Of a stretch of DNA of 64,000 bases, positions 9,542 through 35,151 are shown one piece after another. Each line of letters begins with the position of its first letter. The first letter of the stretch is position 1. Where the stretch lies: IMG/VR virus record IMGVR_UViG_3300034117_001294, positions 1 through 64,000 of that record; one strand, 5' to 3'. The position numbers and the translations under genes are program-made. The notes below the pieces were generated by a model. The model was not told the DNA's origin. It saw only the letters and a program-made list of their open reading frames with translations, and ran no database searches.

Positions 9542-10285
9542 ATGTTCACATTAACTAGAAACTCACTGATAGTATTCCAAATACTAGCACATCTTTCATT
9601 CTTTGTACTGCTTTATTACGGCACACTTGCACAATGGGCCATTACCGCAGGACTGTATCTTTTCTTTGCCACTATCGGTGGTACAGTAACTTATCACAGA
9701 TTACTGACTCACAGATCCTTTAAAGCACCCAAGTGGTTTGAATATTTTGGAACCGTTGTGGGATCAATTGGTGGTGGTGGTTCTAGCCTAGGTTGGGTAG
9801 CTGTGCATAGAGAACATCACAAGTTTACTGATCTCGAGAAGGATCCCCACAGTCCCTGGTTTAAAGGTTTCTTTAGAGTACAATTTTTAAGTATGTTTGA
9901 AGTACCTAATATTCGTTACGTACCGGACCTGTTGCGTTCTAAATTTCATATGTGGATGCATCATTACTACTGGCTAGTAAATTTAATTTATATCACAATC
10001 ATCTGCCTAATCGATCCGTTTGCAATTTTCTATGCATACTTTGTTCCTACCTTATTTGTATGGCATGCCGGCAGTTTTACCAATACAGTAAATCATTCTC
10101 TAGGATATCAAAATTTTGACACCGGTGATCGTAGCACTAATAATCTAATCACAGGATATCTAATTGCCGGAGAAGGATGGCACAATAATCATCATTCTCG
10201 TGCTAGCGATCCGCAATTTGGTAAGAAGTGGTGGGAGTTTGATCTAGGTTGGCAAGTAATTAAGCTCGTGAAAAAGGACTCCTAG
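9542..10285 (+). CDS. Delta-9-type fatty acid desaturase
   Basis: His boxes HRLLTHR, HREHH, WHNNHH plus transmembrane segments. Confidence 0.9.
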   Translation: MFTLTRNSLIVFQILAHLSFFVLLYYGTLAQWAITAGLYLFFATIGGTVTYHRLLTHRSFKAPKWFEYFGTVVGSIGGGGSSLGWVAVHREHHKFTDLEKDPHSPWFKGFFRVQFLSMFEVPNIRYVPDLLRSKFHMWMHHYYWLVNLIYITIICLIDPFAIFYAYFVPTLFVWHAGSFTNTVNHSLGYQNFDTGDRSTNNLITGYLIAGEGWHNNHHSRASDPQFGKKWWEFDLGWQVIKLVKKDS

Positions 10286-30759: not shown

Positions 30760-30814
30760 TTTGCCTGTCAAGCATCTGGACATAGTCCAGTTAGACATGT
30801 TGGGCGAGGACTTC

Positions 30815-30843
30815 TTGACAGCCTCGTCAAAATGTAGTATAAT
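30815..30843 (+). promoter_or_regulatory. Consensus sigma70 promoter for tmRNA
   Basis: TTGACA-17 nt-TATAAT. Confidence 0.85.
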
Positions 30844-30850
30844 TTAAGTT

Positions 30851-31195
30851 AAGACTGTATGAAGTAGACAGAAAAGGATTCAAGACGCGGGGGCAGTGCC
30901 CGCCAGGTCCACCATAAAACACATTAGCCTGACTGAAACGGGCATCGAGTACGTGGAACGTGGAAGAAGGTTCGATTCCTTCATACTCAATTTCAGTAGT
31001 GTGTTTTATAATGGGCCTGACACAGGATCGATTGGGTCACAAGTATTGAAATGGACAGTCCGGCAATGTAGAAGCCGTTAGGATTGGGGTGACCCGGTCG
31101 CAGAAGCAAAACAAAGTAACCGCAAACGACTCACAGTTCGCATTAGCTGCCTAAACTCAGCTTAGGGTAGTTATACCTCGTAACAGAAAATAACA
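30851..31195 (+). ncRNA. ssrA: Circularly permuted (two-piece) tmRNA; acceptor piece about 30851-30914, coding piece from 31013, tag ANDSQFALAA at 31122-31154
   Basis: T-arm GCGGG-GGCAGTG-CCCGC plus CAGGTCC-A-CCA precedes the 5' strand GGGCCTG; 7-bp acceptor stem with G3.U70; tag gca aac gac tca cag ttc gca tta gct gcc taa; outer boundaries approximate. Confidence 0.92.
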
Positions 31196-31222
31196 GAAAG
31201 CACCTTCGGGTGCTTTTCTTTT
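31195..31222 (+). terminator. Intrinsic terminator after tmRNA
   Basis: gaaagcacc-ttcg-ggtgctttt-ctttt. Confidence 0.85.
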
Positions 31223-31251: not shown

Positions 31252-31410
31252 ATGAAACAGAGAAAGCTAGTAGCTAAACTGTACAGGGCTTGCGTCGACC
31301 ACGATGCCGAGAAACAATACGAACTTCGTTTAAAAGAGTTCGCCAAAATCTTGAAACACAAGGCCGAAGGCAAACCGTTTACACACAAATGGACTTTGGT
31401 AAGGATTTAA
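31252..31410 (+). CDS. Small basic protein, 52 aa (not in ORF track)
   Basis: AGGAGG RBS, TAAATA at 31226; MKQRKLVAKLYRACVDHDAEKQY... Confidence 0.6.
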   Translation: MKQRKLVAKLYRACVDHDAEKQYELRLKEFAKILKHKAEGKPFTHKWTLVRI

Positions 31411-31462
31411 GATTGTAATACAACTGTAATCTTTTAAACATAATACTACGATAAATATTGCT

Positions 31463-32347
31463 ATGCAAAAAACTTATCGTAGTATTTTTGTGAGTGATGT
31501 CCATTTAGGTACAAAAGACTGTAAGGCGGAACAGCTCAATAATTTTCTCAAGCATAATAGTTGTGATACACTATATCTTGTAGGCGATATCATCGACGCT
31601 TGGAAAATACAACAAAACAAATGGCGTTGGAAACAGAGCCACACTAATGTGGTACGCAGAGTACTAGGACACGCCAAGCGTGGCACCCGTGTTGTATTCA
31701 TAGCAGGCAATCACGATGAATTCTTAAGACCAATGATACCCTATGGTTTCAACTTTGGTCTAGTAGAAATACACAATCAAATAGAACATATAGGTGCAGA
31801 CGGCAAACACTATCTAGTCACTCATGGAGATCTGTTTGACGGCATTACCCGTCTTGCACCATGGATAGCATTCCTGGGAGACAAAGCCTATGACGTTGTT
31901 CTTACACTCAACAATAAGTTTAATTGGATTCGTCGCCGTATGGGTTTTGGGTACTTTAGCCTTAGCCAGTATCTTAAGTACAAGGTTAAAAAAGCAGTAG
32001 ACTTCGTGTTCAAATTTGAAGAGAACTTGGCCAACTATTGCAAGAAGCGTGGCTTCGACGGAGTTATCTGCGGACACATACATCACGCAGAGATAAAAGA
32101 AATCAACGGTGTCACATACATGAATGACGGTGATTGGGTCGAGTCATGCACAGCACTTGTAGAACATTGGGACGGACGTTGGGAAATAGTTACTTGGACC
32201 AAGGAGAAAGATGATGTGGATAATGTTATTGTTAGCGATACATTCAAAAAATCCAAACGACATCCCGGGAAGAATAACATTAATGTTTCCGGATCAGACA
32301 TCGTGCGAATCGATCCTGAAGACAATGTCGTATCAACTAAAGTTTGA
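31463..32347 (+). CDS. plcP: PlcP-type metallophosphoesterase (LpxH-like family)
   Basis: SIFVSDVHLG, LYLVGDIID.W, GNHDEFLR, HGDLFD, CGHIHH, YMNDGDWVES; GNHD rather than LpxH GNRD. Confidence 0.75.
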   Translation: MQKTYRSIFVSDVHLGTKDCKAEQLNNFLKHNSCDTLYLVGDIIDAWKIQQNKWRWKQSHTNVVRRVLGHAKRGTRVVFIAGNHDEFLRPMIPYGFNFGLVEIHNQIEHIGADGKHYLVTHGDLFDGITRLAPWIAFLGDKAYDVVLTLNNKFNWIRRRMGFGYFSLSQYLKYKVKKAVDFVFKFEENLANYCKKRGFDGVICGHIHHAEIKEINGVTYMNDGDWVESCTALVEHWDGRWEIVTWTKEKDDVDNVIVSDTFKKSKRHPGKNNINVSGSDIVRIDPEDNVVSTKV

Positions 32348-32368
32348 AAATTTTAAGGTAGTAGGCGA

Positions 32369-33091
32369 ATGCAAGAAACAATGAAATTCAGTGATAAAAT
32401 TACTATTGTAATTCCTTGTAAGAATGAGGAAAATTACATTCCGTATCTATTAACGCACTTACGTAATCAAATGATAGGTAGTACCAGAATCATTATTGCA
32501 GATTGTTCAACGGACAACACTCGTGAAGTTATTCAAGTATCCAAGGGAAATCTCAATGTTGAAGTTATTGAAGGCGGCCCTGTTTCTACTGCCAAGAACA
32601 ACGGAGCACGGCTAGTTACTACTCCATATATTTTATTCATTGATGCTGATGTACGTTTCTTTAAGGATACGGTTATCCGGGATGCTGTTGCTGAAATAGA
32701 GTCAAAGAACTTAGATCTTATCGGACTAAACCTCAAATGCTATGATCAAGACATTCGAGCAAAGATCGGATTTACACTTTTTAACGTTATAAACAATATT
32801 CTAAAATATTTCTCACCGTTTGCTATTGGTGCATTTATGCTAACTCGTAGAGATCGTTTTGAAGAACTAGGTGGGTTTCCTGAAAAAACAGTAACATCTG
32901 AGGACTATTTTTTATCTAGGCAGTATAGCCCTAAAAAATTCAAAATATTAAATCATTATTTTGGACAAGATAGTCGAAGGTTTAAGAAGATGGGATATTT
33001 TGGAATGGGATGGTATCTCATTAAAAACTTTATCAATCGTAATAATCAAGAATATTGGGACCGGTTAGATTCGTCAAAGTACTGGAACTAA
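32369..33091 (+). CDS. Glycosyltransferase family 2
   Basis: IVIPCKNEE, DCSTDNT, FIDAD, SED, DSRRF. Confidence 0.9.
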   Translation: MQETMKFSDKITIVIPCKNEENYIPYLLTHLRNQMIGSTRIIIADCSTDNTREVIQVSKGNLNVEVIEGGPVSTAKNNGARLVTTPYILFIDADVRFFKDTVIRDAVAEIESKNLDLIGLNLKCYDQDIRAKIGFTLFNVINNILKYFSPFAIGAFMLTRRDRFEELGGFPEKTVTSEDYFLSRQYSPKKFKILNHYFGQDSRRFKKMGYFGMGWYLIKNFINRNNQEYWDRLDSSKYWN

Positions 33092-33140: not shown

Positions 33141-33166
33141 AAACCCGCTTTGGCGGGTTTTCTTTT
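33141..33166 (+). terminator. Intrinsic terminator
   Basis: aaacccgc-tttg-gcgggttt-tctttt. Confidence 0.85.
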
Positions 33167-33189: not shown

Positions 33190-33219
33190 TTGACATCGGT
33201 GCTAATACTGATATATAAT
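33190..33219 (+). promoter_or_regulatory. sigma70 promoter
   Basis: TTGACA-18-TATAAT. Confidence 0.65.
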
Positions 33220-33261
33220 AGTAGATGATGAATTAATCATCTATTTTAAAGGAAATTAAAA

Positions 33262-33711
33262 ATGAAGAAAATCGCAATCGCATCTCTAATCGCAATGGCA
33301 GCAATGTCTGCATCCGCATTAGAAGTTGGTGTAACAGCCGCACGTGAGTACACAGGTACAAACACAGACGGTATGGGTATTACACTAGGTCAGAAGTTTG
33401 GCAAAGTTGGTGTCACTGCTGGATTTGAGCGTTTCACTAAGGAAGTCAACGACCAAGATCGATTGAGCCTAACAGCTGGTTACGATGTTGCAAAATTTGG
33501 TCCTGTAACAGTTACTCCAAAAGTCGGGGTTGCTCATCTCAGAAACTCTGCCGCAGTTGACGGCTATGCTCTAACACTCGGTGTTGGTGCAAGTGTTCCG
33601 TTAAACAAAACTGTTGACCTCACAGTTGATGCTCGTCGCCAATACGGTCAAGACCGTGTTAACGCATTTGACGGTAACACAGTTACCGCCGGACTAAAAG
33701 TTAAGTTCTGA
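33262..33711 (+). CDS. Outer-membrane beta-barrel protein (8-strand OmpA/Ail-like)
   Basis: Signal peptide, amphipathic strands, C-terminal AGLKVKF. Confidence 0.8.
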   Translation: MKKIAIASLIAMAAMSASALEVGVTAAREYTGTNTDGMGITLGQKFGKVGVTAGFERFTKEVNDQDRLSLTAGYDVAKFGPVTVTPKVGVAHLRNSAAVDGYALTLGVGASVPLNKTVDLTVDARRQYGQDRVNAFDGNTVTAGLKVKF

Positions 33712-33770: not shown

Positions 33771-34076
33771 ATGATTGGTATAGATATTACAAGAATATCT
33801 AGGTTTGAAAAAATGTCAAACTTAGAACAGTTTATCAAACGATTCAATGTGGACGGTACTACTGCTCTAGCGGCCGCAAAGACCTGGGCTTGTCTTGAAG
33901 CAGTTTACAAAGCAGAAGGCGGCAATGTTAACAGTGAGCAAATCAGAGTGCTGTTTCCAAAAAATTCTGCACCCAAGATTGTGGATGTTGATAACACCTT
34001 AAAGTATAACTACACAATGACACTTAGCCATGAAGACGATCTAGTGGTAGCAGTAGCATTCGGAACAAAGGAATAA
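33771..34076 (+). CDS. acpS: Holo-ACP synthase (phosphopantetheinyl transferase)
   Basis: GIDI..ISRF, WACLEAVYKA, TLSHEDDLVVAVA. Confidence 0.75.
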   Translation: MIGIDITRISRFEKMSNLEQFIKRFNVDGTTALAAAKTWACLEAVYKAEGGNVNSEQIRVLFPKNSAPKIVDVDNTLKYNYTMTLSHEDDLVVAVAFGTKE

Positions 34077-34323: not shown

Positions 34324-34477
34324 AATTCAAGAAACTATTTTTGTTATTAAACTAAGTCAATTGGTTAGAGATCGAGGTGGCGACGGCAATACATTTGCTG
34401 ACTTGCCTGCAACAATAGAACAGGTCATTCAAGAGCTAGTGCCCGGCGATGTTGTTGTTGAAGTAGAACAAGCATAA
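34316..34477 (+). CDS. Small hypothetical protein
   Basis: MAKIQETIFVIKLSQLV; AAGGA RBS. Confidence 0.55.
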   Translation: MAKIQETIFVIKLSQLVRDRGGDGNTFADLPATIEQVIQELVPGDVVVEVEQA

Positions 34478-35151
34478 TTAGGTACAGTATATTTTGTTAG
34501 TGTTTCTTCGGAAACACTAAAATTATGTTTGTAATGTGCTATCCTAAATTTTTGTTTAACGCTGAGATGCACTATTGCAACCGGATATAATCTGTCAACC
34601 AGTGGATGTCCTAATAGATATTTTTCTATAGATGCTACTAGACAGTCAGTGGGATGTACTATTTTATGTAGTAGCCAATAAGTTCTGTTTTCTTCACCGG
34701 AGTTAGTTTCGTGTGAATTAATGAGGCGGCATAAAGGAAGATAAGCAGTTATCTTAACACTCATAAAAATATCAAATACATTTAAACTTTCTCCAATCAT
34801 CACACCCAATGTTAATAATGCAACTGCACCAGTGTTCCTACTTTCGGGTATAGAATTATCAGTTGGCAGCGTTCCGGCTAGCATTAGAAATCCAAACTGA
34901 CTAGAGTTCGGAAACGAATAGATAGAAAATGAAATTAAAACATTAGTAGATAAATCTTCAACAGCCAAGACACGGTATTCTGAATTTTTATCTAACAACA
35001 TGTCTATAAGTATCCTTTCGAAATCCTCGTCAGATTTGATATTTTTAAGAGAACCTTGTATATGTGATTTGGATCGATAGATAGATAAAATACTTTCGCA
35101 GTCCAAAAGAGAACATTGAAAAGCTCGAAAGTTACCATATACTAGTTCCAT
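34429..35151 (-). CDS. Hypothetical AT-rich antisense insert
   Basis: 240 aa; own TAAATA 4 nt upstream. Confidence 0.5.
   Translation of the reverse strand: MELVYGNFRAFQCSLLDCESILSIYRSKSHIQGSLKNIKSDEDFERILIDMLLDKNSEYRVLAVEDLSTNVLISFSIYSFPNSSQFGFLMLAGTLPTDNSIPESRNTGAVALLTLGVMIGESLNVFDIFMSVKITAYLPLCRLINSHETNSGEENRTYWLLHKIVHPTDCLVASIEKYLLGHPLVDRLYPVAIVHLSVKQKFRIAHYKHNFSVSEETLTKYTVPNYACSTSTTTSPGTSS

Follow-up and report, generated by a model that had tools for sequence, protein, structure and literature searches.

A phage cassette coupling a PlcP-like metallophosphoesterase to a GT2 glycosyltransferase, with a predicted role in phosphate-starvation lipid replacement

The locus considered here lies in a large freshwater-type phage, in a window comprising the first 64,000 nucleotides of the IMG/VR record IMGVR_UViG_3300034117_001294 (229 kb; about 65% complete), and shows a two-gene organization. 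The first gene (31463-32347, + strand, 294 aa) codes for an intact metallophosphoesterase (Pfam Metallophos, E 3.8e-10), and the second (32369-33091, + strand, 240 aa), which starts 21 nt after the stop of the first, codes for a GT2 glycosyltransferase (Pfam Glycos_transf_2, E 6.4e-20). Terminator-like hairpins at 31196-31217 and 33141-33160 (+) bracket the pair, and the latter is followed by a perfect TTGACA-18-TATAAT promoter for the next gene at 33190-33219. Both genes are under strong purifying selection (dN/dS 0.03-0.09; 0.07-0.09 for the GT2). A small ORF of unknown function (31252-31410, +, 52 aa), which may not belong to the cassette, lies between the upstream terminator and the repeat described below; tblastn recovers it with 65-82% identity in about 20 of 80 viral loci. 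A megablast search with 5 kb against isolated phages found nothing, and ARAGORN found no tRNA or tmRNA in the window, although Rfam finds a permuted tmRNA.

A TAAATA motif (31452-31457, +), resembling a -10 or a T4-late promoter element, is located 11 nt before the ATG of the first gene. It lies within 30 nt upstream of 37 of the 259 ORFs in the genome, against about 0.8% expected from its genome-wide density, and is thus a real recurrent upstream element, although its assignment to late transcription, as proposed in the sequence-only reading, is not shown. Further upstream, at 31413-31430 (+), 33-50 nt before the ATG, is a Pho-box-like direct repeat, TTGTAAT-ACAA-CTGTAAT, with two 7-bp arms in 11-bp phase. 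This is the only TGTAAT-N5-TGTAAT site in the 229-kb genome (0.2 expected).

The metallophosphoesterase contains all five motifs of its superfamily, namely SDVHLG (D12, H14), VGDIID (D42), AGNHDE (N83, H84, D85), THGD (H121) and CGHIHH (H205, H207), and these metal-binding and catalytic residues are invariant across 47 family members. The core spans residues 4-247, whereas the 47-residue C-terminal tail (248-294) is variable and modeled with low confidence. The sequence-only reading had assigned this protein to PlcP rather than LpxH on the basis of GNHD, in place of the GNRD of LpxH, and of PlcP-like terminal motifs; our analysis confirms the sequence features and supports the assignment. The protein scores only 48.2 and 35.9 bits against the LpxH models NF003743 and TIGR01854 (cut-offs 134 and 190 bits; 47 bits in a scan of the genome), and a sequence search of the PDB recovers LpxH only weakly (E 4e-4, N-terminal half), with GNRD in the aligned LpxH chains; sequence identity to LpxH is 18-20%. 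The predicted fold is nonetheless LpxH-like, including the helical lid inserted in the metallophosphoesterase core: the top 25 Foldseek hits are all LpxH and the next family is four orders of magnitude weaker in E-value. Notably, genomes with a true LpxH (235-333 bits) also hold a paralog scoring 50-57 bits, while alphaproteobacteria hold only that paralog. The phage protein is 50-56% identical over its full core to these paralogs (53% to Pseudomonas orthologs with plcP-agt synteny), which compares with 46-47% identity between characterized PlcPs (PMC8528852). In a rapid tree with SH-aLRT support only, LpxH of four bacteria is separated from all phage and cellular PlcP-like proteins (SH-aLRT 100). 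Of 79 cellular loci coding for such proteins, 44 have an Agt-like GT4 directly downstream, 17 have a diacylglycerol kinase upstream and 11 have a polyphosphate kinase nearby, but they are not linked to lpx genes. Thus, the phage protein is a PlcP-like enzyme and a predicted Mn-dependent phospholipase C, with the proviso that its membership rests on agt-linked orthologs rather than on direct comparison with a characterized PlcP (the 2026 JBC Burkholderia paper provides no motif data).

The product of the second gene has a DXD motif (D92-A-D94) and a predicted GT-A fold (AlphaFold pLDDT 83), and lacks any segment reaching transmembrane level (maximum KD(19) 1.27), but has an amphipathic helix (131-149) and an aromatic, basic C-terminus. 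It is, thus, distinct from the characterized Agt, a GT-B fold GT4 of about 335-345 aa with the Glyco_transf_4 and Glycos_transf_1 domains, the difference between GT2 and GT4 being also pointed out in the sequence-only reading. No Agt ortholog was found in the rest of this incomplete genome record, only a GT4 fragment match of 25% identity at 127 kb. Besides the best-matching generic GT2 profile, the protein passes the Pfam Glyco_transf_21 threshold (30.1 bits against 21.7), but falls well below that of TIGR04283, the MftF-like/arsenosugar GT2 family (65.4 against 182 bits). Structure searches recovered only generic GT-A enzymes (TarP, TarS, WrtF, PcManGT), and the ESM Atlas only generic, mostly viral, GT2 clusters.

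In 80 viral contigs with close homologs of the esterase, the next gene is this GT2 in 54 and an Agt-like GT4, 42-47% identical to cellular plcP-adjacent Agt, in 25; none has both, none has neither, and one has no room. Conversely, all 69 GT2-bearing loci with room have the esterase upstream. The GT2 therefore occupies the slot of Agt. In the tree, the GT2- and GT4-linked esterases interleave, with that of the window being 94% identical to GT4-linked ones, and the homology break lies exactly at the glycosyltransferase ORF: DNA homology between the window and two of the compared loci, L103/L108, covers only the small ORF and the plcP core. These relatives are defined by similarity of this gene and their flanks are often unrelated. 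Cellular contexts, in contrast, give no direct support for a diacylglycerol acceptor: none of the 79 cellular plcP loci has a homolog of the GT2 alongside, and its nearest cellular homologs (30-34% identity) are instead next to genes for VTT/DedA-LssY membrane proteins.

The link to phosphate is suggested by the repeat and by its neighbors. A match of at least 10 of 12 positions occurs in 40% of 81 regions upstream of homologous viral plcP genes, against 1.3% of background windows, with conserved arms and a variable spacer. The same repeat, sometimes in the canonical form TGTCAT-N5-TGTCAC, precedes phage pstS in 9 of 10 related loci, and TAAATA is likewise conserved before plcP and pstS in relatives. 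Further, pstS is adjacent in 11-12 relatives and divergent from plcP in Pelagibacter phage Mosig, while Pho boxes precede bacterial plcP-agt operons (PMC4796936; PMC8528852). However, the copy in the window has A where the canonical Pho box has C in both arms, and lies 21 nt from TAAATA, against about 10-12 nt in many relatives. It matches the literature consensus CTGTCAT-N4-CTGTCAT at 11 of 14 positions, which alone is not above chance in this genome (19 sites at 11 of 14 or better found, 22.5 expected). Hence, the case for a Pho box rests on the uniqueness of the exact repeat, its conservation and its sharing with pstS, with the host, and accordingly its PhoB site preference, being unknown.

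Taken together, these observations lead to the proposal, which we consider the most likely explanation, that the two genes form a phage auxiliary cassette for membrane-lipid renovation under phosphate stress. By homology, the first component belongs to the PlcP family, members of which in bacteria cleave phospholipids (PE, PG, PC) to diacylglycerol and a phospho-head group. From gene order and the replacement of Agt in relatives, we infer that the GT2 transfers a sugar from a nucleotide sugar to that diacylglycerol, making a phosphorus-free glycolipid so that the membrane stays intact. The cis-element suggests that the cassette is switched on by the host PhoB when phosphate is scarce, as for the phage pstS genes in relatives, and the released phosphate is inferred to feed nucleotide synthesis for a very large phage genome (about 380 kb in the near-identical contig). 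In this interpretation, the cassette is a mobile module, whose glycosyltransferase has been exchanged repeatedly between an Agt-type GT4 and this unrelated GT2. Thus, the sequence-only proposal of phosphate liberation with preservation of the membrane gains support, although phospholipase C activity and the acceptor and sugar of the GT2 remain predictions, and its alternative of receptor alteration is not excluded.

The closest precedent is the bacterial PlcP-Agt lipid-remodeling operon (Sinorhizobium meliloti SMc00171; Phaeobacter MED193_17359; Pelagibacter HTCC7211 PB7211_983/960; Pseudomonas aeruginosa PA3219/PA3218), which has a comparable arrangement of an LpxH-like metallophosphoesterase, a glycosyltransferase immediately downstream on the same strand and an upstream Pho box, to which the direct repeat in the window may correspond. 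The version in the window differs in being phage-encoded, in its GT-A fold GT2 partner, in the C-terminal tail of the esterase and in the TGTAAT rather than TGTCAT arms; close viral relatives, however, carry the full plcP-GT4(agt) form. That the slot after plcP can be filled by different glycosyltransferase families making glycosyl-diacylglycerols has a precedent in certain bacteria, e.g. the processive Pgt of Mesorhizobium loti and "types 3 and 5" in PMC4796936. The phage enzyme is much shorter than typical GT21 or GT2 lipid glycosyltransferases and lacks TM segments. The inferred regulatory logic of boosting phosphorus supply during infection of P-starved hosts parallels that of the pstS and phoA genes of cyanophages, which are probably regulated by the host PhoB (Zeng and Chisholm 2012), but the cargo here is a membrane-lipid phosphorus-recycling pathway rather than an uptake or phosphatase gene, the hosts are probably proteobacterial, and the repeat is of the proteobacterial (TGTCAT-like) rather than the cyanobacterial type.

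Of the alternatives, one that is unlikely but survives best is that the esterase is indeed a PlcP-type phospholipase C, while the GT2 makes a polyprenyl-phosphate sugar or otherwise modifies the cell surface (LPS or O-antigen), changing receptors to block superinfection, with its pairing with plcP reflecting co-regulation rather than a shared pathway. This is suggested by a weak PHROG match to GtrB-like O-antigen conversion (E 3e-6, confined to residues 10-94), by the neighboring VTT/DedA-family proteins of its cellular homologs, which probably include polyprenyl-phosphate flippases, and by a DPMS-like mannosyltransferase having the best TM-score among the PDB hits (0.70). However, the GT2 lacks the C-terminal TM helices that GtrB, ArnC and DPMS enzymes probably possess, and its mutual exclusion with the Agt-type GT4 and its strict linkage to plcP also run counter to this view. 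Slightly less likely still is a role for the phospholipase in lysis or membrane takeover late in infection, with TAAATA marking late expression and the repeat binding a phage regulator rather than PhoB. While the shared TAAATA motif, the deviation of the repeat from the canonical Pho box and the many other lipid genes of the phage (five desaturases, an ACP-like ORF and a PPTase) are compatible with this, the repeat is unique in the genome and hence not a general phage promoter class, it sometimes takes canonical Pho-box form and precedes pstS, the archetypal Pho-regulon gene, in relatives, and the obligatory glycosyltransferase partner argues for rebuilding the membrane rather than destroying it. 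Finally, the possibility that the esterase is a phage LpxH acting in lipid A synthesis beside an LPS-core or similar transferase, although consistent with the LpxH labels of its homologs in JGI and GenBank, its best NCBIfam and PDB matches and the listing of viral lpxH under LPS biosynthesis in virome papers, is contradicted by the scores, motif, tree, paralogy and gene linkages detailed above and is very improbable.

We found no paper describing such a phage cassette, whereas the cellular PlcP-Agt pathway is already known. It is about as likely as not that an abundant group of large freshwater phages carries this mobile, PhoB-responsive module, with the 240-aa GT2 being a previously unrecognized, non-homologous family of diacylglycerol glycosyltransferases that has repeatedly displaced Agt, and the widely reported viral lpxH being a mis-annotation of this pathway; this would explain why "lpxH" keeps appearing in virome AMG lists under LPS biosynthesis. 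The family is very common, with thousands of near-identical proteins in metagenomes and more than 550 viral stretches in IMG/VR, and the GT2/GT4 alternation offers a clean natural experiment for finding a new glycolipid synthase family. Phosphorus often limits microbes in lakes and oceans, and membrane phospholipid is one of the few large internal phosphorus stores that a cell can give up. A phage bringing its own PlcP-glycosyltransferase pathway under the starvation switch of the host would add lipid renovation to the known viral phosphate strategies (pstS, phoA, phoH), and infected cells would change the glycolipid signal measured in P-poor waters.

The region under study belongs to the first 64 kb of a 228,849-bp IMG/VR virus record that CheckV rates as about 65% complete, and a contig encoding an identical GT2 in the same gene order is 380,947 bp long. 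The phage carries RIIA, NrdA, NAMPT, ThyX and a dCMP deaminase. Two same-strand ORFs, 31463-32347 (294 aa; Pfam Metallophos) and 32369-33091 (240 aa; Pfam Glycos_transf_2), are separated by 21 nt and bracketed by terminator-like hairpins at 31196-31217 and 33141-33160. The esterase has every metallophosphoesterase ligand and displays GNHD in motif III, where LpxH shows GNRD. Thus, the sequence-only reading, which had noted a GNHD-containing PlcP-like metallophosphoesterase immediately followed by a GT2 at 31452-33091, was correct in its observation.

Although public records call the homologues LpxH, the LpxH equivalog models recover the esterase with only 48 and 36 bits against cut-offs of 134 and 190, and a sequence search of the PDB finds LpxH only at E 4e-4, over the N-terminal half. 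An AlphaFold model (pLDDT 83.5) shows the metallophosphoesterase core with a helical lid at residues 127-195, and its top 25 Foldseek hits are all LpxH at 18-20% identity, i.e. the same predicted architecture but a distant family. An exhaustive profile-free search recovered 938 clusters at E<=1e-30, covering residues 4-247. The tail beyond this core (residues 248-294; 32205-32347) is variable and modelled with low confidence (pLDDT 37-53); both long (about 294 aa) and short (about 250 aa) forms occur among relatives, with either glycosyltransferase type, and homology to the closest GT4-linked genes ends where the tail begins.

The nearest cellular relatives are 50-56% identical and come from Alpha-, Beta- and Gammaproteobacteria. 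Of five such genomes, the three beta/gamma ones have a true LpxH (235-333 bits). Two of these three, Pseudomonas graminis and Roseateles agri, also showed the paralogue at 50-57 bits in the same scan, while the Chromobacterium paralogue was seen in the search for cellular relatives; the two alphaproteobacteria have only the paralogue. In 44 of 79 cellular loci the next gene on the same strand is a GT4 of about 345 aa, in 17 a diacylglycerol kinase lies upstream, and in 11 a polyphosphate kinase is nearby. This is the plcP-agt arrangement described for marine bacteria, methanotrophs and P. aeruginosa (PMC4796936, PMC9239053, PMC8528852). A maximum-likelihood tree, obtained by a quick search without bootstraps, separates four LpxH sequences from all phage and cellular PlcP-like sequences with SH-aLRT 100, and the phage group forms a well-supported clade of its own (99). 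Taken without direct comparison to a characterised PlcP sequence, these observations place the esterase with PlcP rather than LpxH.

To investigate the glycosyltransferase slot, we collected 80 IMG/VR loci whose esterase is 74-96% identical to that of the window. The gene directly after it is a window-type GT2 in 54 loci, a GT4 in 24, and a GT4 with one ATP-grasp gene in between in one (RimK-type; related locus L144, 4901-5791), while in the one remaining locus the contig ends and leaves no room; no locus has both types and none has neither. These relatives are defined by similarity of the esterase gene, and their flanks are often unrelated. The phage GT4s are 42-47% identical over their full length to the cellular plcP-adjacent GT4s; relatives therefore carry the canonical plcP-agt operon. 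In the reverse test, all 69 GT2-bearing viral loci with room upstream have the esterase there, adjacent or overlapping in 67 and 1.1 kb away in 2. GT2-linked and GT4-linked esterases interleave in the tree, with the esterase of the window being most similar (94%) to two GT4-linked ones, and between a GT2 locus and a GT4 locus with sister esterases DNA homology stops at the start of the glycosyltransferase ORF. This is non-orthologous displacement within a fixed slot, and it is the main argument for the proposal that the GT2 does the job of Agt. Both genes of the cassette have dN/dS of 0.03-0.09.

The GT2 is predicted to be a GT-A fold enzyme (pLDDT 83) with D92-x-D94. It has no transmembrane helix, an amphipathic helix at 131-149, and a C-terminus with 12 aromatic residues in 45, features that are compatible with a monotopic enzyme working at the membrane surface. 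However, structure and sequence matches do not reveal its acceptor, and its cellular homologues are distant (30-34%) and lie next to VTT/DedA-LssY membrane proteins rather than plcP; hence, diacylglycerol as the acceptor remains an inference.

Upstream of the esterase lies TTGTAATACAACTGTAAT (31413-31430), comprising two TGTAAT arms in 11-bp phase, which is the only such site in 229 kb, where 0.2 would be expected. In 81 upstream regions of homologous viral genes, 40% contain a match of at least 10 of 12 positions, as against 1.3% of background windows; there are 27 distinct versions, with conserved arms and a variable A/T-rich spacer. Notably, in ten related loci that also carry pstS the same repeat precedes pstS in nine, often as 1.5-2 boxes and in three loci in canonical form (TGTCAT-N5-TGTCAC), with TAAATA following about 10-12 nt later. 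Such tandem canonical boxes (e.g. TGTCATCGTACTGTCAC) are found among the related viral loci L095-L132, for example at L099 1530-1557, L110 164-191 and L117 2848-2875, and offer evidence that these phages wire several genes into the host Pho regulon. Pho boxes with the consensus CTGTCAT-N4-CTGTCAT precede bacterial plcP-agt operons (PMC8528852). Nevertheless, the copy in the window matches that consensus at 11 of 14 positions, which is no better than chance sites in this genome, and it lies 21 nt from TAAATA, with a weaker TAATAC at the canonical distance. TAAATA is a genuine recurrent upstream motif, present before 37 of 259 genes, although the late expression ascribed to it in the sequence-only reading remains conjectural. 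It is also found at -11 of the only sizeable minus-strand ORF in the neighbourhood (34429-35151, -; 240 aa), which has no family match and is shorter (190 aa) in the 381-kb relative.

Further context for a phosphate link comes from pstS lying beside the cassette in 11-12 relatives and being divergent from the plcP homologue in Pelagibacter phage Mosig, where the latter gene is annotated as UDP-2,3-diacylglucosamine hydrolase. The Mosig intergenic region (L001 4895-4950) contains a TTAACA-N5-TTAACA direct repeat in 11-bp phase and AAATAAATA before the ATG, which may be an analogous control site of a different sequence type in a marine pelagiphage.

Directly upstream of the cassette is a phage-encoded permuted (two-piece) tmRNA gene (30811-31197, +), which scores 101 bits with Rfam RF04321 tmRNA_permuted (gathering 47) and 70.9 bits with RF01849 alpha_tmRNA (gathering 50), but was missed by ARAGORN. 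Its tag frame reads ANDSQFALAA-stop at an estimated position of about 31118-31150, and it is bracketed by a perfect TTGACA-17-TATAAT promoter (30815-30843) and the terminator at 31196-31217. Its 3' end sequence recurs upstream of plcP or pstS in relatives. While the host is not known, this gene hints at one of alphaproteobacterial type. Downstream of the cassette, at 33190-33711 (+), a perfect sigma70 promoter (TTGACA-18-TATAAT, 33190-33219) precedes a gene for a 149-aa protein with an N-terminal hydrophobic stretch resembling a signal peptide and small outer-membrane beta-barrel or porin-like matches (Porin_4, YfaZ, OMP_b-brl). It looks like a phage-encoded outer-membrane protein, and weak homologues (34-49%) occur in three related loci.

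The phage genome additionally encodes five FA_desaturase-family genes (53-65 bits, all above the Pfam cut-off; window 9632-10243 (+) and genome record 109626-110198, 115850-116437, 119688-120314 (-), 123509-124129 (+)) and a PP-binding (acyl-carrier-protein-like) ORF (genome record 116960-117118 (-)), suggesting a wider lipid-modifying repertoire than the cassette alone. Desaturase genes also flank the cassette in 13 related loci. A short 4'-phosphopantetheinyl transferase (ACPS) homologue of 101 aa (33771-34076, +; Pfam PF01648, 29 bits), two genes downstream of the cassette, possibly serves the phage ACP-like protein.

The lipid-remodelling pathway itself is known in bacteria, and PhoB-controlled phosphate genes appear to have precedents in cyanophages. 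Full-text searches recovered no paper describing a phage-encoded PlcP or a plcP-glycosyltransferase cassette, and virome studies list viral 'lpxH' under LPS biosynthesis. What is new here is the viral carriage of the cassette, its abundance, the exchange of GT2 for GT4, and the shared Pho-type element. Based on the family assignment, the linkage and the conservation of the cis-element, we propose that under phosphate starvation host PhoB activates the cassette, whereupon the PlcP-like enzyme is predicted to cleave phospholipids to diacylglycerol and phospho-head groups. The GT2 is in turn inferred to cap diacylglycerol with a sugar, which would keep the bilayer intact while phosphorus is freed for phage DNA.
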